Positions 2,111 to 55,555 of a stretch of 64,000 nt of DNA are shown piece after piece. Where the stretch lies: contig LSRY02000043.1 in assembly GCA_001643675.2 (NCBI GenBank), positions 62,001-126,000 of the forward strand, written 5' to 3'. Both the position numbers and the translations under genes were made by a program. Origin of the DNA: Monocercomonoides exilis PA203 (taxonomy: Eukaryota > Protista > Preaxostyla). The first letter of the stretch is position 1, and each line of letters starts with the position of its first letter. The notes beneath the pieces were generated by a model. The model ran no database searches, was not told where the DNA came from, and saw only the letters and a list, made by a program, of their open reading frames with translations.

Positions 2111-2899
2111 ATGATAATTTTCATCGTTTTGTCAGCAGCAGTTGCTGATATTTCTCCAAATTTCATTGATGCCAAAACAATCTTGAATCAGCCTCCTCAA
2201 CAGTTTGCAAAATCTATGGAAAATCAACATTTTAGATCCAAAAAAATAGCAAAATTGAATAAGCACCAGGAAGATATCTCAAAGCCAGATTATTTTCCAA
2301 ATACAGAATTGAAATCAAAACTACTATCAAAAGAAATGCAAGGCATGTCAAAGGAATTGTTGGAGGATCATTTCCAACTTTATGATGGATACATAACCAA
2401 TGCCAATAAGCTTCTTGCAACTCTGCGAAATTTTTCGACTGAAAAAGAGTATCGAACAGATCGACGAAGGCGTCTTGCGTTTGAAGTTAATGGTATTTTG
2501 ATGCACGAGCTTTATTTTGAAAATCTAACACCAGAAGAAACGCAACCGTCTGAAAATGTGAAGGACTTTTTTTTGAATCGATTTGGCACAATTGACAATC
2601 TGTTCGAAGATTTGCGTGAAGTTGGATCCACAAGAGGAGTTGGATGGGTTGCTGTGATGCATGATACAACAACGAATAATACGTATATTAATTGGGTTGA
2701 AGAGCATCAGCTTGGAATGCTTGTTAATATGGAGCCCCTTCTCGTGCTTGATTGCTGGGAGCATGCATTTATTAAAGATTATGGAGCTTCCGGTCGTCCA
2801 TCGTTTTTTGAAGCTTCGTTGAAGAGAATTGATTGGAATGTGGTTGAAAAAAGAATAAATGCTGTGAAGAATGGAATGAGCGTGACTCGTTCTTCTTAA
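2111..2899 (+). CDS. SOD: Fe/Mn superoxide dismutase with hydrophobic N-terminal signal peptide; intronless
   Basis: Metal ligands EDH(FQLY), MH(ELYFENL) and LDCWEHAF (DxWEHA signature). GVGWV motif. N-terminus MIIFIVLSAAVA. Confidence 0.92.
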   Translation: MIIFIVLSAAVADISPNFIDAKTILNQPPQQFAKSMENQHFRSKKIAKLNKHQEDISKPDYFPNTELKSKLLSKEMQGMSKELLEDHFQLYDGYITNANKLLATLRNFSTEKEYRTDRRRRLAFEVNGILMHELYFENLTPEETQPSENVKDFFLNRFGTIDNLFEDLREVGSTRGVGWVAVMHDTTTNNTYINWVEEHQLGMLVNMEPLLVLDCWEHAFIKDYGASGRPSFFEASLKRIDWNVVEKRINAVKNGMSVTRSS

Positions 2900-9830: not shown

Positions 9831-11099
9831 AAATTAAGAGAAATCTGAAAAACAAAAAAAGAGATTCCAGATATTGATGAAAGTGTTTTATTGAAAAACG
9901 TGTCTGTAAACTCTCAAATCGTAATTATATAATTTTTTTCTGATGATTTAACCACAAGAAAAATAAATAAAAAAGTTAACCCTGGGTGACGTGGTGACTT
10001 CTGACGTGACCTTTTCGATTTTTGACGGACTTGCCAGATTTTTCCACGTCACATAAAAAAAAGGAAAAATAAATATATTTTATCAAAATTTCCATTACAC
10101 ATTTTTCACTGACGTGCAAGCTGTTATCAGATTTTTGACGTGTCACTGACGTCACCTGTCTCTGACGTCACTCCATGTCAGAAATGTGTTTATGCTTTTG
10201 AAATGCGAAGAAGAACCAAATGGTCAGTAATGTTTAGAATTGTTATTGATTTTGTTTTTCTACTTATTTCCTAAATTTTTCTAATTTTTCCCTCAATTCT
10301 CCATTTTTTTCTAAGTGAAATACATACATCAAAAGAAAGAACATGATAATGCTATTTATTATTCTTTCAACGCAATAGCACAACATTGAGAATGACTTGT
10401 TGTCGAGGTTTTGATTTTGTTGTTATTCATCTTTAATTTATCTCTTTTGTATATTTTCAATCATGACTTAAACTGCTAAATTGTCTTTGAAAGAAAAATG
10501 AATATTAAGTCGATTTAACATCTTTGTTATTCAAAAAATGTTGGAAATAAATTCAGTTGTTGAAGAAAATGAATAGTCTAAAAATGATTGTTTCTTTAGG
10601 TGCTAAAGTTCAAATAAATAGGGATGCTCTCATTTAATGACGAGTGAAGTTTTGATTACAACTGTCTTGTTAAAATTGATGAATTACGTGCAACCGTGGA
10701 ACGCTTTTGCATTTATGATTTTCAAAGCTGTGAAAGGCCAAAAGTTTAATAAATTACTCAAAAGAGCATAAAATGGGATGAAATATTTAACAAACGAACA
10801 AGTGTGAGAATTCTTCTAAGCACAACGGTGTTCCAGCCAGTCATTTCGAAAATTTTTGTAGAAGAAAAGAAGCAACAAGATTATTTGATTGTTTCAATTT
10901 TTGTAAGTTTTTTTCAATAAAAAATATGAAAAAATTCACAAACAAAACTTTTTCATATTTCGAATAATAATCTGCTTTCAATTTTGTGAAATGGCAAAAA
11001 AAGAAAAATAAAACATCAAAGTTACAATATTCATTTCTTCTAATTTTCTCAATCAAACGAAAATAGACAAAAATATTCATCGGCAATTAATCGAATATT

Positions 11100-12340
11100 T
11101 TTTTTTGTTAAAAATAAAGCAATTCGCAAAAAAATAGCGATGATATCTTCATATCCTTCTTCTTCCATCTTTTTGAGCATCTCCCTTTTGGTTGTCTTTC
11201 TCTTTGCCTCTTTCATTTTGTTACCATCTTTTCTTTCATTCCCCATGAAATAAAATGAAAAAACTCAATAGATCACTCACAATTCTGTCATTCACTGTTT
11301 GCTGCTGAATTTCCTCTAAAACAACTTAAACTGCTCACCTTTTCAAAAAGTCTTCAACCATCACGCCTGTGCCATCTGCTGCTCTTTTTATTAATTCAAA
11401 GCATTTTTTGCTTATTTCTCCATAATTATCCATTGCTGTTCGAAGCACCCGAACAACGCTTTCAATAAGCCCAGCAAATTCTTCATTCCGCAATTTGCAT
11501 TCCCTAAAGAAAGAGTCCAACGTTCCGATCCATCTCAATAAAATGAATTCTTCTTTGGTTTCTTTTCCTCTCTTCCAATCCACACATTTCGACAGCTCTT
11601 CAAGTTCTCTCTCCGCTTCTCTCGCAAAATGCAGCTCATTTCCAACAATATCTTCCAAGCTTCTTTAGAAACAGAATTTTTGAGTCAGAAATTCCCAAAT
11701 CGAATAATAGTTAAGATGAGAAAGAATGTTGCGTTCCTGATAACATTGGATTACTCCCGCTTCACATTCAGATACAGCTTCTGCTCGACAAACTTAATTA
11801 AAACAAAAAAAACCTTGACAATGGAAATCACAGAAAAATTTTTTCACACATTCTGCCCAAAAGCAACTCAAAACCACCAATCACATTTCCACTTCTTTTT
11901 GCAGCTCTTCATTTTCCTCTTTGTTCAATACAGCTTTCAAAAGATTAGGAACAAAAATGGAATGAACTACTTCTGAAATTAAACCATTAGAGAGTAGCAG
12001 ATAACAATCACAAAGATAAACCAGAGCATTTCTTTCTTTTCTTCTCCTTTCTTCTATTTTTTCGAGAATTAACTTTTCTTATATTTCACAAAGAAACGAA
12101 CCATTCAAACCATCCATATTCACGCTCATTATAATTATCCAATATTCAACATGCTCCAGAAACACAGCTGCAGTACCAGACACAATTTTTTATGTTCGAT
12201 CATTTTATGTATTTTATCAAACATTTTTTTGTGAAAACAAATTTAATCCTTTGTCTCACATTGCTTCAATTACTCAATGCATTTCTTCCATTTGCTGTCT
12301 GCGCATCTCCATTGCATCTTTCAAGCTCAGAAAACATTTC
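11100..12340 (-). pseudogene. Decayed member of a large uncharacterised helical protein family (Monocercomonoides-type)
   Basis: Blocks MFSELERC..., LLKAVLNKEENEELQK/EVEM, LHFAREAERELEELSKCVDWKR and KMEEEGYEDII are broken by several stops and frameshifts. Family assignment is from recognition, not a search. Confidence 0.75.
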
Positions 12341-12752
12341 TGAATAAAATAAATAAGATATAATCATAATCATAAAAAAACCAGCATTAACATAAAACGC
12401 AAACCCAAAAACGTATTTTCAATATTCTTCTCCTTTATTTTTTGCTTATGTTGCAGTTGGAAAGTGTCACACTTCAACAATTCAAACAAAATAAACACAT
12501 GAAAATAAAGGAGAAAGAAATTGAAATGTTCAAAAAAAAATAAGTGTGAAAAATTTTGTATTCATACCAAGATTAAACTGATTTGTTCTATAAATAAGCT
12601 ATTTCGTAGATAGTTTTCGAATAAAAAAACGAATAATTTTGTAATGGGATACATTGATCATTCACAAAAAATTCAAAAAAGATATTATTATAAATGTTCA
12701 TATATTTATAATTTAAACTTTCAAGTTGTTATTCTCTGAATATAAATGAAAT

Positions 12753-12753
<1 letters not shown>

Positions 12754-12801
<48 letters not shown>
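12754..12801. repeat. Poly(T) tract (similar homopolymers near 115-143, 17387-17412, 30787-30825, 59376-59410)
   Basis: Directly visible homopolymer. Confidence 0.95.
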
Positions 12802-12802
<1 letters not shown>

Positions 12803-13700
12803 TGGAAAATTGGTGATGGACGTAACGAACTTTTTTCTTCACGTCGCCCAGGGTTATAAAAAAGAAAGAAAGAAAAAATTAAGTTATTTTTTGAAAATTC
12901 TACAAAAAAACAAAAATGATAGCATAGTGTACATTTTAACATGTATCCATCGAATTTGTTTTTTATTTCACTGTGAACAAATGAGAAGAAATGAAAGGAT
13001 TTTATGTCATAGCAGCCTTCGGAGAGATGATCAATATAAACGAAAAACAATATTTTAATGTTCAAAACAGTTGTAGTAAAAACAATCTGTGAGTTATTTT
13101 TTTTTAAAGTCACTCATGTTTAATATTTTAGTTGAATAAAAAAAGTTTCCCTTGTGAGAATAAGTGTAAAGAGGAGAAATTTTGTCGTTTTTTATCAAAA
13201 AATGGTCAAAAAAATGTTGAATTTCAATGAACCTGAAAATTAAACATTTACCACTTTTCAAAAAGAATATCATAGATAGTAATTTTTGTTACAATCTTTT
13301 CATATATGAAATTTTGGTACTTCAAAAACTCTCACATTTTTTCAACAGAATAATTTTTTAGAAAAAATAAAAATTCAAAAGTAATTCTTGAGGAATAAAC
13401 GAAAAAGTCGAATGTTATGCTCTGACGAAATATTAAAATTAAATATTTTATCGTTTATAAGAAACAATAACCATCTAACTATGAGAGACAACCAAATTTT
13501 CGATACAAAAGCAAACTCGAAAACATAAATATTCAAATCGAAAGGTAAAATAAAAACACACAAAAAAGACGAATAATTTTAAGAATACATCAGAACGATG
13601 TCTTTTAAGCAGACAAAATAGAAACAATAAAATAAGATCCAATAAAATTGATATGATCAATCTCAATCTGATTTTGATTTCTTGCTCCTCTCCAACTGAA

Positions 13701-18274: not shown

Positions 18275-21200
18275 TCACCACTGAAGCAAGCAGTGTTCAT
18301 CATCGAGCAGCATTGCCTTCATTGAATCATAGTCGCATGTACGTGCATAGCTCATCATCTTGCCCCACAGCGGGTCCTGGTCAACCACCTCCCACAGGCG
18401 GAGCAGCCCAGACACATGCGTCTGCTCGTTGTCGTCCTTGCACGCAACCACTTTCTTCTCAAAGCTCGCCATCGACGCTGTGTAGAACACCTTCACCAGC
18501 TCCTCCAGATCATCTGCTGGCCCATACGGCAGTACGTAGTTCTCCAGCCCCATCAGCACCTGATGCATCCGCGCAGACATAAACGGGATAGTTCCACCAG
18601 ACACTGTTGACTCGTTGGCAGGCACCGTCCGCCCGAAGTCGATCAGAAACACCTCCTCCTTCGCTGTGCCTTCTCTCAGCAGCACAAGATGATCTGGTCG
18701 CACATTTCTGTGCACTTTGTTCTGCCTGTGCATCACCTCGAGTGTGGTGATCATATCAAACATGTGCTTCCCCAAGTGCGGCGATGTCCATGGCCACGAC
18801 TTCCCCACGGGTGCACACACAAGCAGACGATCCAGCTCTTCCCAGCACACAAAGGAGTTTGCATGTGGCACACGCGCCTCCATAATCGTCTGCAGAATAA
18901 GAATTTCGTTCATCAGCTCCTCCGCCTTCGCTTCCATGTACGCTTTGAAAGAGCAAGGTACAGTCTCATCCAACTGCACAACTTCATCATCATCATCGTC
19001 GTCGTCGTCTTCATCTCCATTTCCATTGCGAGCATTTACACTCTTACTACTCTTGGCCAACGTTGTATCACCATTTCCTTTGCCTTTTGCTCCTTTCTTC
19101 CCCTTCTTCTTCTTCTGCACATGTGCCACCAAGCAATAGCTCTTCTTCCCAAACCCGACGATATCGCTGAACGAAAACCGTATCCCACACACCTCGCATT
19201 TCGGAATGTACCCAAAGAAGTTCGGTGGTTGGTTCAACATCCATGTGAAGTTTGCAAACGACGTCTCCTCACAAAACGGCTTGGGTGTTGTATACACAAC
19301 GCACATTGTGCCATGTTGCTTGTATCCAATAAAGATCTGATAGTAAAAAGGAGTCATCGCAATCGTTATGACATAGAATCTCCACGGCTGTGCCTGCAGC
19401 AGCTTGTAGGTGTGGATCATTGTCTCTCCCGTCTCATCTTTGGTGAGCGACCTCCGCTGTGCAATGTACCAGTCATCTAAATTGTCTGTCGTTGATCGCT
19501 TGTAATGCGTGGGTGTTGGGTAAAACATTGGCGGAGGCGATGGAGTTGAACGGGAACTTTTGTCATTGCTTTGCGTGTTTGAAACAGAAACTCCTTCGCT
19601 TTTTGATGATTTTGACTGAGAAGCAGCTTGTGCATTGTTCTGCTTCTGTTTCTGCTTCCTAACTCTTTTTCTCCTCGTTTTTGTCCAGTAGAAGTCGATA
19701 AACGTCACAAAAGAGCGCTGCACGAAGCGGCATTCAGAGGGATGGCCAGTCAGCACCATGAATGTTGGGTACATGTTTCCCAGTGTTATTCCACACTCAG
19801 AAGCAGGGCAGATGTAGAGGTGACTGTATGGCTGGGTGGTGATCTTGATTGGATAGTTCGAGGAGAGGAAATCGGAAACACTTGGTGATGTTGGGGCAGC
19901 AGCTGGATGAGCAGGTGGTGAGGGTGCATTGCTCATTGGAATAGCAGAAGAGGGAGAAGAGGAAGAGGAGGAAGAAGGAGAAGGAGAAAACGAAGAAAGG
20001 GAAGAAGACGAAGGGGATTGGAGAGGAGAGGAGAAGGGAAGAGCAGATGGATGTGGGGCAAGTGACTGAAATGAAGAGTGAATGGAAGAAGGTGGAATGA
20101 GTGGCTGTGTAAAAGTGTCTGATTGAAGTGAATGAGATGTCTGATTGATTGAATTGCTATCAGAAACAGAATGAATTGGAGGGATAGAAGAAGAAGCATT
20201 GGGAAGCAATGGCTGAATATCAACTGAATCAGAAGATGAATTTGAAGAAGAAGACGAAGACGAAGACGAAGATGTAGATTCAACAGCAGTAGAAAGAATA
20301 CTTGTTGAAGCATCTGGAAGGAGAGCCAATGAAGTGTCAGATGTTTGATCACTGAGAAGAGAGAAAGGAGCAGATGAAACAGATGAAGCAGAAGCAGAAG
20401 AAGAGGAAGAAGAAGACACAAATGAACGAGCTTTCGAAAAAGGCGAGAAAAGAGAAGGCGAAGAACGAGAAGAGGAAGACAGGAAATCAAACAGTCCCTT
20501 TTTCTGTTTGTGAGGCGAGGAATGAAAAGGAGAAGGCGAAAGCGAAGGCGAAAGAGCGATTGAAGTGGCAGGGTGTGATTGAAGGGCAGAAGGCGAAGTG
20601 AAACCCATCCTCAGCGGAGAAGGAGAGGGAGAAGGCATCAGAGAAGGAGAAAGGGAAGGCGAGAGAGAAAGGGAGAGAGAAGGTGAAGATGAGGAGGAAG
20701 ACAAAGGAGAAGAGGAGGAGGAGGAAGCGGAAAAAGCACGAGATGAGAAAGGGGCAGAGCGGAAGGCCAAGATGCGTTGCTGCTGTTCAACCGACATGGT
20801 GGCAAAGGAAGAAGGAAGAAGTGTTTTCGGAATGGGCGATATTCGTGCTGTTGGTCTCAGCTTCGATTTGGACTGCGAAATTGGGTGGGAATGAGAAATG
20901 ACTGGAGAAAGAGACAAAGAGGAAGAGGAGGAAGAGGAAGAAGTTGAAGAAGTTCGTTTGATTCTTTGATGAGATGAATGTTCTTTTGTGTTTTTGTTCT
21001 TTTTCTCTTTTCTTCTTTTGGAAGACGTTTCAGAAGTCTCGTTAATTTCTTCTTCTTCTTCCTCCTCTTTCTCTCCTTTTTTATCCACTTCTTCTCCATC
21101 TTCCTCTTCTTCCTCTTCTTCCTCACTCAATTGTGTTTCTGGCATCAGATCATCAAGAGGAAGTGGAATGAATGAAGAAGAAGGAAAAGACGAGGCTGTT

Positions 21201-24200
21201 GAATTTCTTCCATTTGAGCTGCCTTTTGTTGATCGAAGTGGAGTTGAAGGACCAACGCCAATGTATTTTGGATCGACTGCCTTCTTTCTGAATGAGAAGG
21301 GAGACAGAACAGTGGAAATGATAGAAGTGAGCGAGGAAGAAGAGGAAGCAGATGAAGAGGAAGAGGAACCAGAGGAAGCAGATGAAAAAGCAGCAGAGAG
21401 AGAAGTCGAATTTGCAGATGAGACACTGCTTGAGGATGATTGTGAGCTGATGTTGAAAGCACTTGCGATGCTTGTGGATGACTTGCGTGAGTCCCACTGC
21501 CTCGAAGAAGGAGATGAGATGGAGCTGAACGGCGGGAGATGGCGCTTCCCATCTGCTGAAGTGACGAGAGAGAGAGAAGAGTCATTCAAAGAAGAGCTAA
21601 CAGCAGAGTCAGATGCAGTTGAAATAGAGGGAAGCTCGTTGGGTGCGCCTTGTTTGCGTACTGTGCCTGTTACTGAGCTGTTTGAAGAAAGAGAAGAGGA
21701 GCGGGACAGCTGTGAGGTTGGGGTGGAGATGGAGTAGTTTGAGAGAGAAGGGTTTGTCTCCAGCAGCGAAGCCAGTGTCAAAGGCGGAGTGCTTGCTGGA
21801 TTGGGCACTTCATCTGATGTCTCCACCAGCAGTGCAGACAGAGACTCAATGCTCAGCATCGTGTGCGATCCCACAATTGCTCCTTCTCTCCCTCCGTTTC
21901 TTCCTCCCATTTCGCTTCTTCCTCTTCCTGTTGCTGTTGCTGCATCCCCTGCCATCCTCAGTGCTGATGCTGAAGAAGAAAAGCCCCTCCCATTCAACAC
22001 TCTTCCCCCCACTCCTCCTACTCCTAATCCTCCTTTCTTTCTGTTCGGCGCTTTCTTCGCAGTCTTCTGTGCCAGCACAGTCAGCGCAGACAGATGTGGA
22101 ATGCTGTTTGCCACTTTCGCACTCACCGTGACTGGATGACTCAGCGCTGCCTCGTTCAGAATGGCAGCTGTGTCTGAGTGGTCTGCTTTTGCCTTCGCCA
22201 CTGCAGACTCCACTTCGCTCACATGCAGCCCATAAATCGTGAGGGAACGACGAGTTGAAGCAGGAAAATGTTTGGGCGTTTTGCTGAATTGGAAGCGGTT
22301 CGGATCGTCTTCTTCGGTTTTCTCCTTCGCATTCTCACTTTCCTCCTCTCCTTCATTGCCATTTCCTTCTCCATTCGTGTTCTTGTTTCCGTTTTCCTTT
22401 TGTTCTTCTTCATTCTTCTTCCCTTTCTCCCCTCCGTTTTGTATGTCCATCTTCTCATCTTTCGTCCTGCTGGTTGTTCGGAATGAGTCAATGTCTGAAG
22501 TCAAAATAATTTCTTCCTCTTCCCTTTCCTTCAGTGCCTTCATTTGCATCTCCTCTTTCTTCTTCTTCTTCGCTTTTGCTGCTGCTTTTGCTTTGGATCG
22601 CTTCAGAAGTGGATCAACATCTGGGAAGTTCGCATAAACCTCCCACGATTCGTGATAGTAAGTGAGCTGATAAGGAAGAGGTCTGTTTGGTGGAGAATAG
22701 CAGAGAAGAGGAGGAGATGGGGTGTATTCACGTGATGGATGCTTCTTCTTCTTCTTTTCTTTCTCTTTCTCATTCTCTTTCTCATTCTCTTTCTCTTTCT
22801 CTTTCTCCTTCTGCTGTTGAGGTTGTTGCTGTTTCAATGATGGTGACAAAGAAGAAGAAGAAGAAGAAGAAGAAGAAGAAGAAGAAGAAGAAGAAGATGA
22901 TGATGATGATGATGATGACAATGTTTGAGATTGGATAGCAGTTTGAGAAGGAGAAGAAGCTTCAGATGGAACAACTAGTGTTTGTGGAGGAGAAAGAAGA
23001 GAAGGTGGATCTGTTAAATCAGGTGACTGAGAGGGAGATTCAATGGGAATAGGATAATCTGAGGGAAGAGACAAAGAAGACATCGAAGAGCAGGTTGAAA
23101 GGGCAGGCGAGGCAGTTTGTTCGGGAAAAGAGGAAGAAGGAAAGAGAGAGGGGGAAAATGATGATGAATTATCAACAGTATTATTATTTCCGATATTATT
23201 ATTAAAATTGTTTCCATTATTGACTGGATTTCCATCAACACCCAAAGAAAATAGAGAAACATTTGTATGGGATGCATATGGAAGCTGATCAGAAGAAGAA
23301 GAAGAGGAAGATGATGAAGATGAAGGAGAAGCAGAAGAAGAAGAATTTCCTCTGTTTGTGCTATCAAACAAAGCATTTGAGAATGAAGAAGATGTAGAAG
23401 CAGAAATATCAGGTGAATTTTGTACGAAAAATTGACTGTTTTGTTCAGAAGCAGAAGCTGTTGAAGGGCTTCTGGTGAAAGTTGGACGTTGGGGAACAGG
23501 TTTGATGAAAGGTGTGCGAATATCAGAGAAAGAGGAGGAAGAAGAGGGAGAAGAAGAGGGAGAAGAAGAGGGAGAAGAAGATGGATATTTATTCAATGTA
23601 ACATCAGAAGCATTAATTTGGTAAAGTTGATTGTCTTCTTGTGAAAGAGAATAAGAAGACGAAGGTGACAAAGAAGAATAAAACAAAGAATTTTCACTGT
23701 TTCCATTCATTTGATGCACATCTGTCTGTCTCACAAGAGCAGATGCTAGTTCTTTTGTGGGTGAGTCATTTCCATCATCTGCTCTATGTGATGATGAGGA
23801 GGAGGATGAGGAGGAGGAGGATGATATCATTTGATTGTCTTCTTTGTTGTTAATGAGAGGAAGCTGATCTTCACTTGGAATCATTTGAATGGAAGAAGAA
23901 GAGGAAGACGATGATGACATTTGTGATGAAATCAAATTCAAAGAAGAAAACTGCGTAGATGATGAATTGCCATCAGCTTCAATAACAGCTCCTCCTTCTT
24001 TCTTCATCTTGCTCTTTTCCTCTTCCATCATTTTTCTCATCTCTTTCTCCTTTTCCTTTTCCTTCTCCTTCTTCCTCTCCAACCTCATCCTCTTCCTCCT
24101 CTCCCCCCTCTCCTTCCTCCTCCTCATCTCCTTCAGCACAACCTCCTGCTGTGCATAATTTGCCTCTGAGAAGATGACTGAGTGTGGATGTCTGCTAATC

Positions 24201-27200
24201 TCTGTGTTGAACAGAGGAAGATACCAGCTCTTCGGTGGGGCAATGGGGGGCGAATAAACAGGACGAGGAAGAGGAGAAAAGGGAGTGTCGCTTTCACTCT
24301 CGTCATTTTGGTTGGATTCAACTGGAACAGAAGCAGAAGCAGAAGCAGCAGGTTTTTCTGTTGGTTGTCCAATTTCTTCTACTTTTCCTGCTTTTTCTGT
24401 TTTGTCTGATGATGTTGCTGTTTCCTTTATCGCTTCTATTGTCTTTTGATCAGCCAACTCTTTTACCTTCTTTTCTTCCTCAGCATTTTCTCCTTCTTTC
24501 GTCTTCTCCTCTTTTTTCTCGTTTTCTCCTTTATTTCCAATTGTATTTCCTTTCTCTTCCTCTTTCCCATCGCCATCACCAGCACCACCATCTTCTTCTT
24601 CATTCTTTCCTTCTTCCTCCTCTCCTCCTTCTTCTGCATTCTTCTGCTCCTTCTCTACTTTCTCTTCTTTCTCTTCTTTCTCTTCTTTCTTCTCAGCTGT
24701 CTCAGCCGGTTTCGTCTTCTTCTTCTCTTCTCTTCTCATTTCTTCTCTTTTCATCTCCAGCTTCATCTTCCTCCTCTCCTTCGCCCTCTTCTCCCTCTCC
24801 TTCTTCCTCCTCAATCTGTCATCTTTTATTCTCCTCTCTTCTTCAATCTCTTCTTCTTTCCCTGAATTATACAGCTCCTCCCTACACGGTATAAGGAAAG
24901 GCAGCAATTCCTGTGTCTCGCCATGGTATCTGATTGAACTGTCAGACAAACAGCTGAAAATGGCTGTATTGTGCGGCTTTTTGACGGGCGTCCAGCCATT
25001 CGAGAGGCAGATGAAGAGGAGCAGTGAAGACTCGGCATATTCTTGGTCTTCCACGCTGATCGCATACGGGTCTTCCTCTTCTTCTTTGGAGGTGGGAGTT
25101 GAGGAAGAAGAAGAGGAGGAAGAGGAGGAAGAAGATGATGAATTTGAAGAATTTGAGGAGGAAGAAGAAGAATGTGAAGAAGAAGAATGTGAAGAAGATG
25201 ATGAACCAGAAGAAGACGAATCAGAATAAGATCTTCCTCTCTTGTACACGTGGTGTCTTCCTCTGCTTCTCTTATACTTTGGCTTGCCTTCATCATCCTC
25301 ATCGTCATCGTCATCATCATCATTATATTTCCTTCTATGCCTTCCATGATGATGATGATGGTGATGGTGATTGTGATGATGATGTCTGCGTGGTCTGTTC
25401 TCCTTCGCCACTGATATTTCATCCTCTTCTTTCTCCACATGCTCTTCATCCTCCTCCAACTGTCTGTGTTTGCGCTCTTTCTCGCTCTTCCTCTCACTTC
25501 GGTGCGTCTTCTTCTGCGTGTTCCTGTTCTCTTCGTCTTCCAAATCAACCTTCCTTTCGTCGTCTTCCTCCTCCTCTTCTTCTTTTTCTCTTTCTCCATT
25601 CCCTTCTCTCTCTATCACCATCTTTATGTCTCCTATTCCACTTTTCACATCCTTCTTATCTTCCATTTTCTGTTCATTTCCTTCTTCTTTTCCTTCTTCT
25701 CCCTCTTTCTTCATCGCCTCTTCTTCTGCTTCTTTCTCTTTCGCTGCCTTTCTTGCCGCAATCTTGTCCATCCTCTCCTTCCTCCTCTGCTCCCTCCTCT
25801 TCTCCATCGCCTTCCTCCTCTCATAATTCCTCCTCGCATCTCTTTTCCTCTTCTTCTCCCTCTCCCTCGCCTCCTTCTTCCTCGTCTTCCGCAGCTCCTT
25901 CTTCGCTGCTATCTCCTCAAACGAGTCCATCATCAGCCTCAGAAACAAGAAGGACTTCGGGTGATAATAACCCCCCAAGTCCATCTTTCCATACTTCTTT
26001 GGGATTTTGTCTGCTCGTGTGGGTGGCAGGTCGGCGTCTCTGATTTCGAACTTGCCGCGGAAGTAGCCAGGAAAGGAGGCAGGGTAGAAAGGCATGGGGG
26101 TGGAGAGGAAAGGAGGTGGTGGGTGGAGAAGGAGAGGATGGGGGAGAGGACCCGGGGAGGAGTCTGGGGCTGGCTGGTCAGCGGATTCGGGTGGAGGAGA
26201 TTTGGATTGGGAGGAAGGAGATGGGGCTGAAGATGGAGAGGAGGAAGAGGAGGAGGAGGAAGAAGAAGAGGAAGAAGAATTTATTGATTCTTGTGTGTTG
26301 AATGGTTGAGGGAGAAATTGGTTGTTTGAAGAAGAAGAAGAAGCCGAAGAAGAAGAAGAAGCCGAAGAAGAAGCAGAAGGAGCAGTAGGTTGAGGTACCA
26401 TCTGCTTCATCATCGACATAAGGGCAGGGGAGACGTCGATGCTGGCGGCACCAATTTTGCCAGGCGTTTTGCTGATGTTGTTGCCAGAATTGAATGAAGT
26501 GGGGAAAGAAATGGAGGAAAGGGGAGAAGAAGAAGAAGAAGAAGAAGAAGAAGAAGAGGAAGAGGAAGAGGAAGAAGATTGAGATGGAGAAAGAGAACAT
26601 GTTGTATTGACAGAAAGATTATTTTGTGAAGGAGAAGAAGAAGAAGCAGAAAAAGTATTGTTTTCATTGGGAAAAGAAAAAGAAGCTGAATTTGATTGAA
26701 TTGAAGGAGATGTCCCAGAAGTTGTGGATGTCTGGTTTTCAGAGAAAGAAATGCCATCAGATGAAACACACGAATTAGCTGTTGAGGATGAAGGCAAAGG
26801 AGAAAGAGACGAAAGAGAAGAAGAGGAAGAAGAAGAAGAAGCTGACATATCATTTCCTCCAGCAATGTTAACACCCACAGAATTCACAGCAGTTGAATTG
26901 GCACTGCTGAGTGTAGAGACAACATTAGATAGTGAGTCAGGCAGCCCCGCCGTCAAATCTGCCTTTCCCTCTGCGTTTTGAGCAGCAGGCACCACCACCA
27001 CTTTGGCTGATGTCTTCGCCTTCTCTGCAATCAACGTCGACACCTTCTTCAGTCGCGAGGGGCCTTTCTGTTTGAGGGTGAATGTTGGCTTGACCAGCTC
27101 AGAGGGGGCAACAGTGAGGGAGCGTGCCGCAATCACGTCGGAGTCAGCAGCCGCTGCAAGAGGAATGTCCAACATCTCCCTCAGCCGCCGGGCGTTGGTT

Positions 27201-29395
27201 TCGGAGTCGTCTGGGTCGGAGTCCTGGAGAAGGGAGATAGACTCGGAGGAGGAGGGGGAATAAGGGGGAGGAGGAGGAGAATGAGAGTGGGAATGGGAGT
27301 GAGAGTGGGAAGGAGAGGAGGAGGGATGGGATTTGGGGGAGGGAGAACGAGATGAATGAGGAGATAATGTAGAGGAGGAGGAGGAGGAAGAGGAGGAAGA
27401 GCCAACATTTTCCTGTTCTGAATGAAGTGATGAAGTGGAATAAGCCAAGTGAAGAGAATTTGTGCTGCCTCTTTTGCTGTGTGAGTGTTTGTGGAGGGAA
27501 GAAGAGACAGAAGGAGAGGAAGGGGTGAAGGAAGAGAAGAGAAGAGGCTTCAGAAGCAGAGAATCCGTTTCAGTCTTGTTTGTGGAGCGTGTGGAAGAGG
27601 TGTGGTGGCGATGATGTTGATGTTGATGTTGATGAGTGCTGAGGCGTTGTGCTTGAGGATCGGCAGATTCGGTGGAGGAAAGAGAAGATCGAGTTAAAGA
27701 AGAAGATGATGAGGAGGAGGAAGATGAGGAAGAAGATGAGGAAGAAGATGAGGAAGAAGATGAAGATGAATGTATTTTCACTTTCTGATGAGCAGCAGCT
27801 TCAGAATGGTGGTGGTGGTGGTGATGATGATGATGCCCTCGTTCACTTTCTTCCTGTTCCAGCAGCTTTTTCGCTTCTTCCTCTGCCAATATGCTCGCAA
27901 TCGACTTCTCTGCTGTTTTGTGCGAGTGGCCATTCATCGAGGCAGCCAATGATGTCAGTTCAGGTGTCGGCGTCGGAATCTTCCCTTCCTTCAGCTCCCT
28001 CGCTATCATCTCCTTCGCCTCTCGGATTTTCTGCCGCTGCAGCTCTTTCTCCTTCTGCCTTTTTTTCTTCTCCTTCGCTTTCTCCTTCAAAATACGCTCT
28101 CTTTCCTTCTGCTCCGCCAGCAGCTGCTTCATCTTCTCTCTTTTGTTCGCCTCTTCCAGCGCCTGCCTCTCTTCCTCCCTTTGCCTCTCCTCTCTCTCTC
28201 TCTCTTCCTCCTCCCTCTTCCTCCTCTCCTCTTCTGCTATCCTGCGCTCCTCCTCCTTCTTCTTTCTATGCACTTCTTTTATTTCCTCGTCTGTGAGCAT
28301 GCGAAACTTGTGTCTTTTCTCGGGAAAGCGGAAGTTCATCACCAAAATCAGCCTTTGCGCCACAAACGCGTCCAGCGGGTCTTCGATGAGCAGCAGGAAC
28401 TTCGTCAGCTCTGCTTTGAGGGTGGCGTCCAACGGTAGCTTTGACAGCGGGCGCACGAGAAGAAGCACCGGAAGCACAAATTCCGTCCGCAGCAGCTGCG
28501 GATCACACTCAGTCAGCAGCACTTCCACACACTCGCTCAGCACTGCCAGCCCGCTCTGCTCGAATGTGCTCAGGCGGTCCATCATTGTTTCGAGGAGGAG
28601 CAGAACACACGAGCGAACATGCGGATCTGCTGGCTAATGTTTTAGAAATGAAATATTTATGGAATATTTATTGTACATTGTACATTGAAAAATAAAAGAA
28701 AAACATATTTTCAATAAAAATTAAAACAAAAAATAGTAAAAAATATTTAATTTTTAAAATGCAATGTTTATCACAAACTGTGTATTGGAATAGAATCCTG
28801 AAATACATCAATGTAAACATTGAATAATTTTCGCGGATTGGAAACACCCCATGGGAGGCTGCTTCATTTTTACGTTCATCAGGAAGAAATAATCTTCTTT
28901 TTTGAGATGATTCTTGAAATGGGAAGAACTGAATTCCTCCATGAGGTATAGGAACATATTCAGGCAAAGTCAAAGAAATTGCTACTTTTTGCAAAAATGG
29001 CCAAAAAAAAGTCTTTTAGAAACGTTCCAAATTTTTTAAACAATAATCAGAAATCCGAAAAAACAAAATCTTACAAACGAAGGAATGAGGGTATTTTAGT
29101 CCTATTCTGCAAAGAATCACTTCAAGAATGCTATAATCCACAAAAAGAGGAAGATCGGGAGATTCGGCAATTTCGTCGAGTTTTTCTTTAACAATTTCAG
29201 AATCCTTCTCCCCTTTAATGAAGTGTCGCTTGCAACGATTTAGTGCAACAACACAATCGCGAGGATACGATAAAGCTTTATATTTAAAAAATCATTTAAA
29301 ATTTGATAATGAATTCAAAACAACGTAAATAAAGCAGCAATCATACAAGATTCATGAAAGCGTTGTATGCTCGGGTCCGAGGCAACAAAGCTCAT
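18275..29395 (-). CDS. Giant (>3500 aa) Ser/Glu/Lys low-complexity protein with C-terminal FunK1/Crinkler-type pseudokinase module
   Basis: 10.3-kb terminal exon. Upstream exons spliced by eye from an ATG at 29395 (MSFVASDPSIQRFHES...). C-terminus has QAQPWRFYV, VGFGKKS, FKAY..NEILIL, HRNVRPDHL, LIDFG, GTIPFMS and DDLEE. Confidence 0.8.
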
Positions 29396-39907: not shown

Positions 39908-39960
39908 GTGACTGACCCTTAAGTGATGATCTCTCGTAAATAGAAGAGAAGGAAGTGAGA
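39908..39960 (-). repeat. Right ITR of DIRS element
   Basis: Exact reverse complement of 35317-35369. Confidence 0.95.
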
Positions 39961-42900
39961 TTCACATTTTCTTTTTCAAAGAACATTTCCTTCCAAATTC
40001 CATTTTCGTTATCGAGTGCAACATCGCTCATTGGTTTGATCAGCTCATCACTCACACTCACAGACTGCTCAGTTGCTCATATATCAGAGAGCACATCGAG
40101 TGTGGGCTTTGGATATAGCATTGTGAATGCGCAAAATGGGAATCTAAAAATGGATCGATTTGTGATTGGAGAAGGGCTGACATTCAATGATCACTCAGTC
40201 ATTGAATTTTGTGAAGGAATGGCGAGCGTGATTTGTTCAGGATGCAATTTCAGTGGAGTCAAAAGGAATGAGGGAGATGGAGGATGGATGAAAGGAACAG
40301 TTGGAACGAGTGGAACGTTGATAATTGATGGATGCAATGTGAATGGGAGCAGTTGTGCTGGTGGAAAGGGAGGAGGAATATATGTTGGATTGAAGGGAAA
40401 TGGGAAAGTGGTTGTGAATGGAACGAGTGTGATTGATGGGAATAAGGCAGAGAATAATGGAGGGAATGGAGGGAGAGGAGGAGGGATGTTTGTGTTGATG
40501 GAGAGTGGAGGATGTGGATTGACAATTGGGCAGAATGTTGAGTTTTCGAAAGTGAGGGAGAATGTGGCAACATATGGGAAGAATGTGTTTGTTCATTGTG
40601 GAAGTGGTGTGTTTTTGGAGTCAAAAGTGAATACAAGCTCATTTTCATTTTTTGATGCAAACACCATTCCATCAGATGTGTTGAGGCTGAGTGGGAGTGA
40701 AAATGGGGATGAAAGTGGAGTTATTCCACTGTTTGTGTATTTGTGTTCAATGGAGACAAAGGTGATTGTTGATGGGAGTGGAGGAAATGGGAAGGACCAC
40801 AATCATTGTGGATTTGAGGCATTCAGGTGTTTGACAGTTGATTATTGTGCGAACTCGAGATTGAGTGAAAGTTCAAAAGAAATAGAGGTTGTCTCGTCTT
40901 CGTCAATAACCAAGGAAATAACAGGACAATCATTTGATGTGATAATTTCAGGCAAAATAACATCATCATCCGATGGGGAGAGGATGGGAGTGAATGTGAG
41001 TGATGGAGGATTAGCCACACAAGATTATCTTGTTGGATGTTCGAGTTCACTGACAATGAGGAGACTTTCATTTGTTGTGAAAGGTCAGTTGAATTCAAGG
41101 AGAAGTGCATTCTTTCATTCAACATCAACACTCAGCATGACGAACTGTTCAGTCTCATTTGAGAGTGGGGCATTGACCAATGGAAAGATAGGATACAGCA
41201 TCATTGAGATGACAGGAGGGAATCTGATTGTTGATGGATTTGTGATGGAGGGGGGAGTGATAATGAATGGGAAATCTCCAGTTGCTATTTCAAATGGAGT
41301 TGAATTGGAGATTTTGAATAGCAGAATGATTGGAGTGGAAGCGATAGGGGTGGATGGGGGATGTTTGAATGTGGGTATGGGCGTTAATGGAAATGTGAAA
41401 ATTGAAGAAAGCAATTTTTCATCAACCTGCTCGGGTGGAAGTGGGATGAAAGGAGGAGGAATGATGATATCAATTGGAAGTGGAGGAACATTGAGAGTGA
41501 AAGGAGTGAAGTTTGAGGGATGTATTGTGCCGTCAAGTGAGGCTATGAATGGAGGGAGAGGAATGGGAGGAGGGATGTTTGTTGAACTTCCAAATCAAAT
41601 GGGAACATTTTCATTGGAGAGCATGACATTTGCTGGGTGCAGTGCATGGAAAGGGAAGAATTTGTTTGTGGAAGCACAGGACTTATCGGCTGTCATCAAC
41701 AACACTTCAATTGGATTCAATCCAGTGATTGAAGTGAATGTTGCAGACTTGAATGAACTTTGCGGAAGAGAAAGAGACAAAGCAGAGCTGATTGTTCCAC
41801 TTGTTGTGTTTCTTCGGACATTTTCATCACCAGCATATGTGAGTGGGAGAGAACAAGGAATTAAATTCAGACTGTGTGGATATGAAGATTACCCATGCAG
41901 TACAATTGAAGAAGCAAGTGAATATCGGTATCCGAGTTCAAAGCGAAATATCAGACTGACAAGCACATTTTCATTTGATGAAGAAGTGAAGTTGGATGAA
42001 CAGTCATACGAGATTGATTCTAGAGACGAAGATGTTGGAATAAGAATTGGAGGGACAAGTGCAAAAACACAAGAAGCGTTGGTGATGAACAGTGTATCAA
42101 CAACTTTGACAGGAATATTGTTTGAATTGGGAGGATCAATTGGAGATCGATCATCATTTGTTCATTCGACAAGTGGCACATTGAGATTTGCTGATTGCCG
42201 AATAAAGATGGGAAATGGAGTGGATGCAGTGAGTTATGCTTTTGTGAGTGCAAGTGGAGGGAAAGTGGAGATTATTGGGATGAGATGTGGAGGGAGCGAG
42301 AGAAAAGTGAAATTTGTGGGAAGTGTGATTGTCGTGAATGGGAGTTGCGAATGCATGATGGATGAGGTGATTATGAATCAAACAACATCAAGAGGAGTGA
42401 ATGGATTGGTTGAGATTGCTACAAGCAGCTCAGCCACAATCCAGAATTGCTCTTTCGCAAATTGTGATCTTCCGAGTTGTGGAGCAATTCAGATTGAGAA
42501 GTATTCATCAATCACATTGAAGAACACCTCATTTGAGAACATAACAAGAGGAACAAGAGATGGTGGATGCCTTCATGTGGATTCGAATGATGATGGAAGC
42601 CAAGATATAATCAGAATTGAGAATTGCACATTTCTTGTGGGCAAGGTGAGTGAGAATGGAAAAGGAGGAGGAGGGCTGTCAGTTTCATTGGAGAATCCAT
42701 CTGAGCTGTATGTTTCATCAACAAGATTTGAAAAGTGCTGTGCACCTTCAACAAGTGGATCTTCAGGGAAAGGAGGAGGAATGTTTCTAACTCTGACTGA
42801 AGCAGATGCATTGTTTGAGTTGTCAGATACTCTTATATTTGATGGAAATGAGGCAGAATATGGAAAGAACATGTTCATTTTGTCATCAGATCTGAATCAA

Positions 42901-45900
42901 ACGATTACAATTGATTCATTCAACTTTGATTATTCATCAATGATTAATGATAAAACTCTGTTTGTTGGGAGTGATAGCTATCATTCAAACAAAGATTTAT
43001 TCATGTTCCTCGTTCCATACAACTCATTTGAGATATTTATCTCGTCTAGCGGATTTGATGTTACACGTTGTGGAAGTGAGGAAGAGCCATGTTTCACGAT
43101 GTGGAAAGGGATGAAAAACATGAAAAAGGAGATTGGAGCGAAAACAATTCAGATTGAAGGATCAACAATTATTCAAGATTCATATGATCTTTCCAATTAT
43201 CAGATCAAAAAGGATGTGAAGATGGGAGATGAAGAAACAAAAGCAACATTGAATTTTGAAAAGGCGATTGGAAGTCAACTAGAATATTTCATAGTGAATG
43301 ATATACATCTTGAATTGACAAATATCCAGCTCCGATTAACATCTGAATTTGAGAACTCAGCCAAAACGATCATTTCGAACAGAGCTGGTGATTTAATATT
43401 ATCTGGATGCTCATTCCATTCAGAAGCAGGAGTTACAAATGGATTTGATTGTGTATTTGTGGATATGATTGGAGGCAGTGTGGAGGTGAATGATTTATCG
43501 ATGGAATCATGCAATGTTGGAAACAGCATTTTTGCCATTCACGATACTGAAATTACTTGTCATTTTGTGAATGTTCGAGTGGAATCGTTGAATGAAAGTG
43601 GAGGTTGCATTTTTTCAATCAAGAAATCTGAAACAACAACAAAAACAAATGAAGTGAGTGAGGAAATGAATCTTGTGATTGAGAAATCATCATTTTCGGG
43701 AGTGAAGAGAAGTGACAACGGAGCAAGCATTTTGGAATCAAAGAGTGAGAAAAAGATTTGTTTGGTTGTGAATGAGAGCAACATCACAGAAGACAAAGCA
43801 GAAATGAGTGAAAAAGGAGGAGCCATATTCTTCACATTAGGTGCATCTGGATCAATGAAGATGATCGACTCAACAATCAGTCAATGCAGCTGCAGTATTA
43901 GTTCAGGGAGAGGAGGAGGGGTGTATCTGGCAACAAAGGAAAGAGGAGATTTGAATTTCACATTTGTGGGAATGAAGTTCAGTTCAAACACAGCAAAAGT
44001 GGGAAAAGATATTTTCATTGAATGTTTCAACATCACATTGCAGATCAATGAGAGCCAATTCCAGTTTGATCTTCGAGAAGGCTATTACGATCGTTTCAAC
44101 GCGATATTTGGAAGAGATTATTGCGAACACCAAAGCAACACAGATCTAATTGGGTTTGTAACGATCCATCAGAGTGACACAATCATTGTATGCAGTGTGA
44201 ATGGATCGGATGAAAGACAATGTGGAACAAACACACTTCCATGTTATTCGATTGAACATGGACTGATGCATCTGACCTCAGATATTCTGAGTCTGATATT
44301 CGTTGTTGAAGAGAGTTTGATTGGTGATGAGATAAATCTGAACGAGATGAGTTTGAATTCGAAAAGCAGAGATTTGTGTAAAGTTGAAGTAAAATCGAAC
44401 ATTGAAAGAACAAGTGAGGCTTTGGTGACAACAACAGGAACAGTCTCATTGGTGAGAGTGAACTTTGCGTTTGATTCGTATTTCATCTCTTCACATGAAT
44501 CATTGATATTACCAGAGGGAGGAATTCTTGAAATTATGAATTGTTCATTCACAACAAAACAATTGACAGAAGGAGTTAATGATGCTTTTGCGAGCATTCC
44601 ATTTCGTCTCATAAATATGGAAAAAGGAGAAATACAACTTGATGGATGTGCAATGTCAAATCTCATTATTCATGAATCTGCATTGCATCTTTCTTCTCAA
44701 CTTCCATCAGTAATTGATTCATTGACGATTAGCAATTCAACAATTTCAAAATCTCTGATAGATATTAATGAATGTGGTCAATTAACAATCAAGGATTTCA
44801 AAACAAAAAATATCTCAGTTGAAGGAAATGAAGAATCATTGATATCTTTTTTGTCAATGAAAAAGACAATTCAATTGACAAATTGCTCAATAGGCGGAGT
44901 GAGATCAAAGACCACAAAAGGGAAATTGATGAAATTGAAGGATTGCACAGATGTTTCAATGGACAATTGTATTTTTGATGGAAGTTCAAAGGAAAGAAAT
45001 GATCAGTCTTTGAATGAAAAAGAAGAGATGTGCAGATGGGATGGATCTCTTGTGGATGTTGTGAAGAGTTCAGTGATGATGAAAGACATAACAATCTCGA
45101 ATTCACCAGAAGGTGGAATAACAATGAGTGGAGGGAATGTGAAGATTGAGAAAGGAGAGTTCATTGACAACAATCCATCGATTGAAGGATATTCATCGCT
45201 GAGAAGGAATATCATCTGTTCCAATTCTGGGACATTGAATGTGATGAGTTTGAAAGGAGGAGATGGTTGGAAGGATAATTCATCACTTTGGATGTTGGAT
45301 GAAGGGTGCAGTTTTGAAGGGATTGTTTCCGAAAGGGATTCGTCATTCTTCATTCCAGTGTTGGAGAGTGTCGAGGCAAAAGAAGAGACAGATAGAATGA
45401 AATTGGTATTTAAAGGATTGCTTCTTGTTCCGTGCAATTTGTCATTCTCAGTTGTGAAGAGAAAAGGAGAAGAGAAAGAGATTGAAAAACATGATTTTGA
45501 TGGAAATGGGTTTTTGTCAGAAAGAGAAGTTGAAGGAAGCGTTGCGAAAGATATTATCAGCAGTTTTGGAGATGAAATAGAAGTGAGTGTGCATGTTTTG
45601 TTTGGCAACGCAGAATCTCCTTCATCAACACATTCATTCATCCTGAAGAATGCAAGTATTACTCCTACAAAAGATGATGAAAGAATCTCAAAGGGAGGAA
45701 ATTCGAATGGAAATATATCTTCATGGGCAATGATTATAATTGTTGTATTTGTGTTGTTGTTTATAATTGTTTTGATTATTTCAATTATTGTTACAATAAG
45801 ATGGAGAAGGACAAAAGAAGAGGCAAGAAAATACAAAGAGATTGTTGATGATAACATCAAAAAGGATGCGAAGGCGTTTGAGATGGTGACGATGGAGATG

Positions 45901-47340
45901 GCACCCGAGGAGCGGTGGAGGAGAGCTGGAGGGGAGGTTGAGAAGATGAATGAAGAGAATGGAAAGAAGAGAATATACGAGACGAATATGCAACATTCAG
46001 AGTCATCTGAGCATCTTTTGAGTGAGAGTGACTCCACAGAATATATTCTTGGAAAGGATTCAGACAAGGTTCCAGAATGGGTGTTGGAGGAGGTGGATGA
46101 GAAGGAGTGGGAGGAAGAGATTCAAAAGAAATCGCCATCACCTTCCATTTCGTCAACAGACACCGAAACCACATTTGTTCGAGGGGAGGATCTGTGCCCA
46201 ACCACCTCGTCGATGTCGAATCTGGTGGATGCGATGGCCTGTTCATCGCCTCATGAGAAGCTGATTGTGGATCTGAGGGATTCGCTGTTCATGTTGTTGC
46301 ATGGGAGGAATGAGAAGAAGGAGATGGCAATTGGCTCGTTGAAAGAAAGAGAGGTGACAGGAGCGCAGATCCTGTTCTGGGTGGCGAATGGGGCACTCCA
46401 CTCGTTTGATGAAATGAGCAATCCTCTTTCATCTCTTGCCAACCTCAGTCCTCACATTGTTCTGTTTTCCGAACACATGGTTATCTGCATTGCCCTCCAC
46501 TCCGACTGCACCTCTTCCTCCGATGATTCGGACTCATCATCCATCTCATCATCGACAGTTGCGACGTCTGCAAGTGATGATGATGGCGATAGAGATTCTC
46601 TGCCATCATCAGCGTTTGAGGAGGAGGACGATTTCAAAAAAGAGTGTCTGAGGTGGAAGGCGCCAGAACTGCTGATGAACAAGAACATGGGGGCAACAAA
46701 GGAGTCAGTGGCATTCTCGATTGGGATGATGCTGTGGGTGTGCCTGACGCTGGAGGTGCCGTTTGGGGAGTATGCGGCAGAGGTGGCGGGGCAGAAGATC
46801 AAAGATGGGGAGAGGCCGGATGTGTCGAGGGTGTGTGAGTCGTCGGTGAGGGAGCTGGTGGGGAGGTGTGTGTGCGAGAAAGTGGGGAACAGGCCATCTC
46901 TGGATGAGATAAAGCGGGAGACGTTCAAGGATTTTGTGGGAGGGGCAGTGGTGATGACGATGTCGGATGCGGTTGGGGTTGGGGCTGAGGAGGAGTCGAG
47001 ATATGTGAGAGAAGAAGGGAGTGGCAGCACAAAGAAGGAAAGGAGCAGGGAAGAGGCAGCAGACAGGGCGAAGGATGAAGGGACAGAGCAGCAAATGAGT
47101 CAATGAGCAAATTGTGTGCAGAGCATACTTCTCAGAAGTTGTTGAGCTTGTGGAGAGATGTGAGAATGTGAGGTTGCTGAAGATTGAACGAGTTTCGATT
47201 ATGTTGGCAACTGTCAGGAAGAGGAAACACAGAAGGGTTGGAGTTGTGGGCACATTGCGAATGGGTGTTGGCTGGCTGCTTGGATTGCGTTGGCTGAACA
47301 CCCTGTGATGTGCAAGGGCTGATGAATATGTATTGTTTGC

Positions 47341-55100: not shown

Positions 55101-55555
55101 CGTCCACACGCAGCGAGCGGAAGAACTTGGCATTGGCTGTGATGGAGCAGGCGACAGAGCCGAAGATGGCAGTCCCGAAGTTCGTGAAGACACTGCGGCA
55201 TTCGCGGAGTGCGCAAGATGTGCGGACGCTGAAGACACACAGCAAAGTGAGGGGCAAGCACGATGGACCACAAAAGCAGAGGCATCTGGCGGTTCCGCAA
55301 CGGAGCAGACAGAACGAGACGCGGCTGAGCAGCAACCTGTTCAGAGGCAACACACAGGCAGAAAAGGGGACCAAGCCGAGAGTGGGCAGGAAGATGCTGC
55401 GGATCGACACGAAGACGCGGTCGTACAAAGACGACGAGACGTATGCAACAGAGATGACAGTCGGAGATTGCTTCGACGAGGAATTGTCGTGCTCGTCGTT
55501 TCGGTGCTCTGTGGACTGCCATTCGGATGAGCCGGGGTATTCGCATCGCAAATAG
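49115..55555 (+). CDS. RRM-domain protein with about 1700-aa Ser/Pro/Gln-rich disordered tail (4 exons)
   Basis: Splicing ATGG|..|ERHGQDDDT|RGVKLVDVP.. gives RRM1 (YFAEAGTI..QGYIFIYF) and RRM2 (RFGKITGI..LCFFQF), in frame with ORF 49739. A third RRM-like segment (KFGFITL) is possible. Confidence 0.75.

Follow-up and report, generated by a model that had tools for sequence, protein, structure and literature searches.

What kind of element encloses a decayed copy of a large host gene family between a pair of GC-rich inverted repeats in the genome of the metamonad protist Monocercomonoides exilis, and did that element build the family? The question is raised by a stretch of 64,000 nucleotides from strain PA203 (contig LSRY02000043.1, positions 62,001 to 126,000 of the forward strand), which is referred to here as the window and whose coordinates are counted from its first letter. 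A preliminary description of this stretch, made from the letters alone, had proposed a non-autonomous piggyBac-like element. The segment at window positions 9977-12856 is very probably a non-autonomous hAT transposon that lacks a transposase, is now dead, and carries host-gene cargo inherited by a whole transposon family.

The repeat on which that proposal was founded is present as described. Two GC-rich 14-mers with one mismatch between them lie in inverted orientation 2.9 kb apart, at 9980-9993 (+) and 12840-12853 (-), and a search allowing up to 2 mismatches finds exactly 2 sites in the 64-kb window, as compared with 0.05 expected from shuffles. In the M. exilis assembly that was searched (82,301,135 bases in 101 contigs), an extended terminus motif occurs 71 times in forward and 69 times in reverse orientation, against 1-2 for the reversed control, and many of these sites form convergent pairs 2-3.5 kb apart. 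The GC-rich repeat is real, with the same termini on dozens of copies, and represents the ends of a family of roughly 70 elements.

The tip of the element and its target-site duplication were found by cutting out 23 terminus pairs and aligning their flanks. The element starts with TA[A/G][C/G]CCTGGGTGACGTG, the tip variants in the family being TAAC, TAGC and TAAG, with variation at the fourth and fifth letters. Because the base preceding TA can be T, C, A or G, and letters after it vary as well, the element begins at TA and not at the CCC of the 14-mer. Directly outside the tips lies an 8-bp duplication that is perfect in 18 of the 23 pairs (for instance AATATTAC, CTCCAACC and ATTGAAAC in other family pairs) and a 7/8 match in two more; its mean match is 7.5 of 8, as compared with 3.3 for a control 8-mer taken 20 bp further out. 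Two pairs, the window element included, show by eye a perfect 8-bp duplication with a 1-nt offset. The window element can accordingly be laid out as follows.

9968-9975 (no strand): left target-site duplication, TAAAAAAG, identical to 12857-12864, with an extra T at 9976.
9977-9993 (+): left terminal inverted repeat (TIR) of 17 nt, TAAC and then the 14-mer, from the motif search and the family tip variants.
9994-10200 (+): left subterminal region, dense in TGACG/CGTCA; presumed transposase-binding repeats.
10188-11026 (no strand): non-coding backbone in common with a sister subfamily, 70-72% identical to element loci L055 and L041 and to the outer element of L036.
11052-12370 (-): cargo pseudogene of a ~440-amino-acid (aa) armadillo-fold family (MONOS_ uncharacterized proteins), from alignment to family protein P0002, aa 56-423.
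11793-11849 (-): retained cargo intron of 57 nt, GT..AG, an insertion of 16-17 codons at the family intron site (aa ~185).
12223-12753 (no strand): start of the cargo gene and upstream backbone, 69-78% identical to L055 and L041.
12754-12801 (+): poly-T tract of 48 nt, right subterminal, as seen in the letters themselves.
12840-12856 (-): right TIR of 17 nt, distinguished from the left TIR by a single T-to-C change.
12857-12864 (no strand): right target-site duplication, TAAAAAAG, identical to 9968-9975.

An 8-bp target-site duplication is a hallmark of hAT elements and excludes piggyBac, and on this ground the element is assigned to the hAT superfamily. Short TIRs and subterminal repeats, which are likewise hAT traits, are present in the form of the 17-nt TIR and of the TGACG/CGTCA motifs at the left end, where 10 motifs fall within 224 nt (9977-10200, TIR included), a density of ~45 per kb, as against 0.86 per kb over the window as a whole. 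The preliminary description had instead envisaged a 'Pack' element of piggyBac type that would insert at TTAA and disperse the gene family, since TTAA adjoins the left 14-mer, TTAT adjoins the right one, and the 14-mer starts with CCC. The letters are there, but they do not constitute a target-site duplication: TTAA is composed of the flanking T at 9976 and the first three bases of the inverted repeat, and TTAT of the last three bases of the inverted repeat and the first letter of the duplication. The supposed signature of TTAA with CCY termini dissolves in the same way, the duplication being 8 bp long and the tip TA[A/G][C/G] in place of CCC. Across the family the flanks read NTA[A/G], in which N is any of the four bases and position 4 is A or G, and piggyBac was rejected on these target-site duplications. 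That TTAA is nevertheless frequent at one junction is explained by the fact that 16 of the 18 perfect duplications start with A, and a single flank base is responsible for the chance resemblance to piggyBac. This resemblance extends only to the letters TTAA beside a 14-mer starting with CCC, in the window copy alone; piggyBac elements duplicate TTAA, and their tips and transposase family differ. The protein encoded by the long members with these tips is hAT-like and not a DDE_Tnp_1_7 transposase, whose sharing of the TIRs had been suggested as a check, and most paralogues of the cargo lie outside elements. A genome search for the piggyBac transposase (Pfam PF13843, DDE_Tnp_1_7) also returned no match, a result that is weak alone because control genomes were silent too. 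The likelihood of a piggyBac-like element at this locus is accordingly negligible.

Similarity between independent copies stops at the termini, as the preliminary description had anticipated for a true element. The closest copy, on contig 43, is 92% identical to the window element up to the tips, beyond which the two flanks are alike in A/T richness only; since the flanks are unrelated, the two copies represent independent insertions.

Other copies document further events at family loci. In the case of L049 and L050 (contig 80, 1,563,625-1,566,161 and 1,568,391-1,570,926), two mirror-oriented copies of one element lie ~2.2 kb apart, and their 8-bp duplications, ATTTTTAT and ATAAAAAT, are reverse complements of each other; two insertions did not produce this arrangement, which is an inverted segmental duplication of the element together with its flanks. 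Miniature derivatives also occur, for instance L042 (contig 10, 693,375-694,040), with 656 bp between terminal core motifs and the perfect duplication ATATTTTC, and a copy on contig 20 (603,390-603,542) whose termini pair only ~150 bp apart. The flank of an element on contig 2 (L040:1-477) contains a reverse-transcriptase-like stretch with a YLDD motif, and this copy lies in or beside a retroelement.

No transposase was found inside the window element, in agreement with the preliminary description. Transposase-like sequence is present in two members of ~7 kb, L032 (contig 35; 6,990 bp between core motifs, family tips and a perfect duplication) and L031 (contig 17; likewise with family tips and a perfect duplication), both of which hold a frame of ~940 codons broken by a few TGA and TAA stops. 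Along its length the frame has homology to an intact 924-aa open reading frame (ORF) in L036 (tblastn E = 2e-84), and the C-terminal stretch of that ORF has its counterpart in the frame. The 924-aa ORF matches the Pfam domain Dimer_Tnp_hAT (PF05699) at 24.1 bits, against a cut-off of 21.4, and its nearest named Atlas clusters carry Dimer_Tnp_hAT, zf-BED and ZBED1 RNase-like domains, the last of which offer a lead only towards an RNase-H-like DDE catalytic core. Pfam gave no match to the family's own decayed transposase in L032 and L031. A sequence search of the PDB with the transposase yielded no relevant match, and a protein homologue search yielded one match, an M. exilis protein without Pfam domains. 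Nine further transposase copies were found at 60% identity or more, some of them adjoining listed family termini, and all have stops (including those on contigs 47, 14, 15 and 38); among the more distant hAT transposases of the genome, many are intact. Because all close copies of the family transposase are broken, the family is probably no longer mobile.

Two other interpretations of these frames were rejected. The 924-aa ORF of L036 is not the autonomous partner of the family, as it belongs to a separate, nested 6-kb hAT with tips and a duplication (GTTTACGC) of its own. An alternative genetic code does not account for the in-frame stops of L032, which are a mix of TGA and TAA, related ORFs being intact in the standard code.

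The decayed gene that had been noticed in the interior of the window element is confirmed as the cargo at 11052-12370, which contains 8 stops and 2 frameshifts. The 'probable introns' reported with it reduce to the single retained intron at 11793-11849, the other breaks being in-frame stops and frameshifts. At the intron site the family motif LYLN resumes directly after the AG of the 57-nt segment, and intact paralogues are split at the same position (~residue 185) by 46-67 nt. Retention of the intron indicates that the gene was copied as DNA and not via mRNA. Related cargo of ~1.3 kb is present in all 27 of the element loci sampled, both short and long, including the transposase-bearing 7-kb members L031 and L032 and the longer L034, L035, L037 and L038. 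Its position is fixed, its orientation relative to the asymmetric ends is the same wherever both are readable, and cargo and transposase are convergent in the 7-kb members. All element-borne cargo copies longer than ~110 aa have stops, 2 to 16 each (such copies were handled with X at each stop). Besides its armadillo pseudogene, the 5.2-kb member on contig 28 has an open frame of 261 codons (L037:2296-3078, - strand) in which G, C, N and S abound; it gives the impression of a surface-repeat protein, and is possibly further cargo.

How does this cargo relate to the free members of its family? A family profile built from stop-free pieces and run on a library of 1.84 billion proteins gave 249 representatives at 50% identity, typically 430-450 aa long, and 16 of 16 that were looked up are 'uncharacterized' M. 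exilis proteins. Pfam found nothing above its cut-offs in the full-length proteins. An AlphaFold model from 50 members is confident (mean pLDDT 89.8, pTM 0.89) and all-helical; the PDB structures that match it best are those of armadillo-repeat proteins and importin alpha, so that the family is predicted to have an armadillo fold. A genome search with full-length P0002 produced 3170 first-look candidates. The best ~95 are for the most part intact genes of two exons, often clustered locally (twelve genes on contig 48, for instance). The element thus does enclose, between TIRs, a decayed copy of a large, uncharacterised and expanded gene family, as first described. However, none of the best ~95 candidates lies between terminus pairs, among 100 of the 140 termini. 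In DNA searches with whole elements, gene-only loci match only element positions ~1000-2400, no end-homology was found beside them, and the backbone at 10188-11026 was not found in them; diverged true elements do show their ends in such searches. For the surroundings of the free paralogues, the assessment used coordinates and extent of homology only. Given that no best paralogue falls within a terminus pair and that homology is limited to the gene, the transposon carries the armadillo-fold family but did not build it: the ~70 elements, with dead copies, contrast with 3170 first-look candidates and contribute ~70 dead copies to a family of hundreds or more. The earlier suggestion that the element explains the copy number of the family is thus not borne out.

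A history running from host to element would account for the observed termini, duplication, copy number, presence of cargo in all members, decay of that cargo and gene-limited homology of the paralogues. The ancestor of the transposon family would have taken up one member of the large ~440-aa armadillo-repeat host family as genomic DNA with its intron, perhaps via aberrant gap repair, and the captured gene would have come to lie to the right of the transposase gene, ahead of the right end, with the two genes convergent. Every descendant would then have inherited the cargo. Since the same gene is present in the transposase-bearing 7-kb members, the short forms are best read as deletion derivatives of a cargo-bearing autonomous element, and not as 'Pack' elements, a term implying that a non-autonomous element made the capture. 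The common 2-3.5-kb forms would thus have lost the transposase through internal deletion and kept the cargo, and could have moved only with transposase supplied in trans. At present the cargo is a passenger, all sampled copies being pseudogenes.

The nested element in L036 provides a second case of a host gene in a hAT. This hAT, ~6 kb in length (L036:1247-7236; contig 2, about 1,489,360-1,495,350), has tips TA[A/G][A/G]CCTTTGCGACAC, the 8-bp duplication GTTTACGC and the intact 924-aa transposase, and sits within a short non-autonomous member of the armadillo-carrying family that is 97% identical to L055. It has at least four further copies, three of them with transposases 98% identical to the 924-aa one. 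A 347-aa ORF of the nested hAT shows 67% protein identity to residues 1989-2294, the kinase end, of a 2383-aa gene located in the window at 39955-47106, and is 78% identical to a copy inside a 12-kb member on contig 8. Four other copies of the second hAT share the whole 2.7-kb arm at 90-92% (five copies in all), and dozens of host genes share only the central 0.9 kb of the arm, at 81-86%. A piece of a giant kinase gene in a transposon can only derive from the host, which would make host-to-element capture likelier for the armadillo gene too. In the window the kinase gene (39955-47106, + strand) is an uninterrupted ORF of 2383 aa with a protein-kinase domain at its end (Pfam PK_Tyr_Ser-Thr, E = 3e-8); it is a member of the giant tyrosine-kinase-like family from which the 0.9-kb fragment in the second hAT was taken.

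Several observations weigh against the capture history and have to be set beside it. The hAT domain match lies on a related transposase, and not on the family's own decayed one; the cross-check of paralogues against termini is incomplete, covering 100 of 140; and the family tree is star-like, with 42 of 73 inner branches unsupported, so that the direction of armadillo-gene transfer is unproven. Element copies are clustered in this tree, without being resolved (10 changes versus 19 for shuffled labels), and one large clade contains none of them. A tree in which the 22 element-borne copies are constrained to form a single clade is not rejected (log-likelihood better by 34.6, p-AU 0.83), a test in which long pseudogene branches may attract each other. 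In addition, the window element and the L055 sister subfamily form a mosaic, with identities of 70-86% at positions 0-1060 (backbone), 41-59% at ~1060-2240 (gene body) and 76-78% at 2243-2440 (gene start), a pattern that simple vertical descent does not predict. Gene-only loci, the closest of them on contig 27 near 1.120 Mb, contig 64 near 173 kb and contig 34 near 107 kb, in some cases reach 71-82% identity with the window cargo, more than the cargo of the sister elements does, and for the cargo of other subfamilies the figure is at most 67%. The mosaic and the close gene-only loci together suggest either overwriting of the gene body by a paralogous sequence or recombination of backbones between subfamilies. 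Replacement of the cargo in the window subfamily, whether through gene conversion or gap repair with a genomic paralogue as template, or through recombination of one element subfamily with another, therefore deserves to be taken seriously, albeit at less than even likelihood, as the clade test favours one origin of the element-borne copies and the closest gene-only loci may be truncated elements. Such a replacement modifies the capture of a host gene by the family ancestor and is compatible with it.

A more radical departure would be that the armadillo-fold gene is the original second gene of the hAT, and that the free copies are element copies that have lost their ends or been domesticated. 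The gene is indeed found in every member, transposase-bearing ones included, at a fixed place and in a fixed orientation, and the family is known from M. exilis only; some gene-only loci are 82% identical to the window cargo, hardly less than the 84-86% of true element copies, and element copies fall among annotated genes in the poorly resolved tree. Yet the ~95 best free copies, mostly intact, have neither a listed terminus pair nor adjacent end homology, and lie in local clusters of the kind that is typical of tandem gene-family growth. Moreover, only one hAT family is seen with the gene, the related family bears a host-derived kinase fragment, and all element copies are dead. An origin of the gene within the transposon is for these reasons improbable, and capture from the host is preferred.

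Elsewhere in the window, two further uninterrupted ORFs are found, one of 3436 aa at 18275-28585 (- strand) and one of 1938 aa at 49739-55555 (+ strand). A gene for an iron/manganese superoxide dismutase is located at 2111-2899 (+ strand; Pfam Sod_Fe_C, E = 1e-16, and Sod_Fe_N, E = 3e-6), in an organism without mitochondria.

Classical hATs, such as Ac/Ds of maize, hobo and Hermes, have an 8-bp duplication, short TIRs, subterminal repeats and a C-terminal dimerisation domain, and their non-autonomous internal-deletion forms are mobilised in trans. Compared by general description, the M. exilis elements have in common with them the duplication, the short TIRs, the subterminal repeats, the deletion forms and, in the related 924-aa transposase, the dimerisation domain; they differ in that the similarity of the transposases is remote and in that the M. 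exilis family has a resident second gene. The tip TA[A/G][C/G]C fits the often-quoted YARNG start at the first three positions only.

With respect to the cargo, the best analogue is the capture and amplification of histone H3 by a hAT in Dothideomycete fungi (Pseudocercospora fijiensis and Pyrenophora tritici-repentis; PMC6710886, PMC3538342). There too, a complete element with host-derived coding sequence was amplified to tens or hundreds of copies, mostly inactivated (PMC6710886). The fungal cargo is a single-copy housekeeping gene, whereas here, in a metamonad protist, it is a whole intron-bearing member of an already expanded armadillo-fold family. In addition, the fungal copies are reported to have been inactivated by RIP (repeat-induced point mutation), while the M. 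exilis cargo decays via stops and frameshifts, no search for RIP having been made. Plant Pack-TYPE elements (Pack-MULE, Pack-CACTA; PMC8903248) are similarly bounded by TIRs and target-site duplications, lack a transposase and have a host-gene interior, with homology to host genes limited to the captured segment (here positions ~1000-2400). In their case, however, a non-autonomous element captures and the autonomous partner has no insert, unlike the M. exilis family, in which transposase-bearing members carry the same gene.

Gene capture by hATs is already known in fungi and plants, and the general interest of the present case is modest. For M. exilis itself, these elements are not described in the genome papers, and a literature search found no description of a hAT for the genus Monocercomonoides. 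The genome paper reports that 35% of the assembly consists of unclassified repeats that overlap expanded gene families (PMC8767320). It is conceivable, although unlikely, that cargo and host genes exchange sequence both ways, with hATs acting as a standing conduit by which giant families are copied, overwritten and re-seeded; if this were so, part of the 35% 'unclassified repeats' would be transposon-shuffled gene families, such as those of the armadillo-fold proteins and of tyrosine-kinase-like receptors. With the superfamily corrected, the window element yields a clear-cut description of one hAT family of this organism, with well-defined bounds. At least two hAT families in M. exilis carry pieces of its largest lineage-specific gene families, and such hAT-borne pieces help to explain the collisions between repeat-finders and gene-finders in this genome. 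Some ~70 apparent members of the armadillo-fold family are transposon passengers, and should not be counted as genes.

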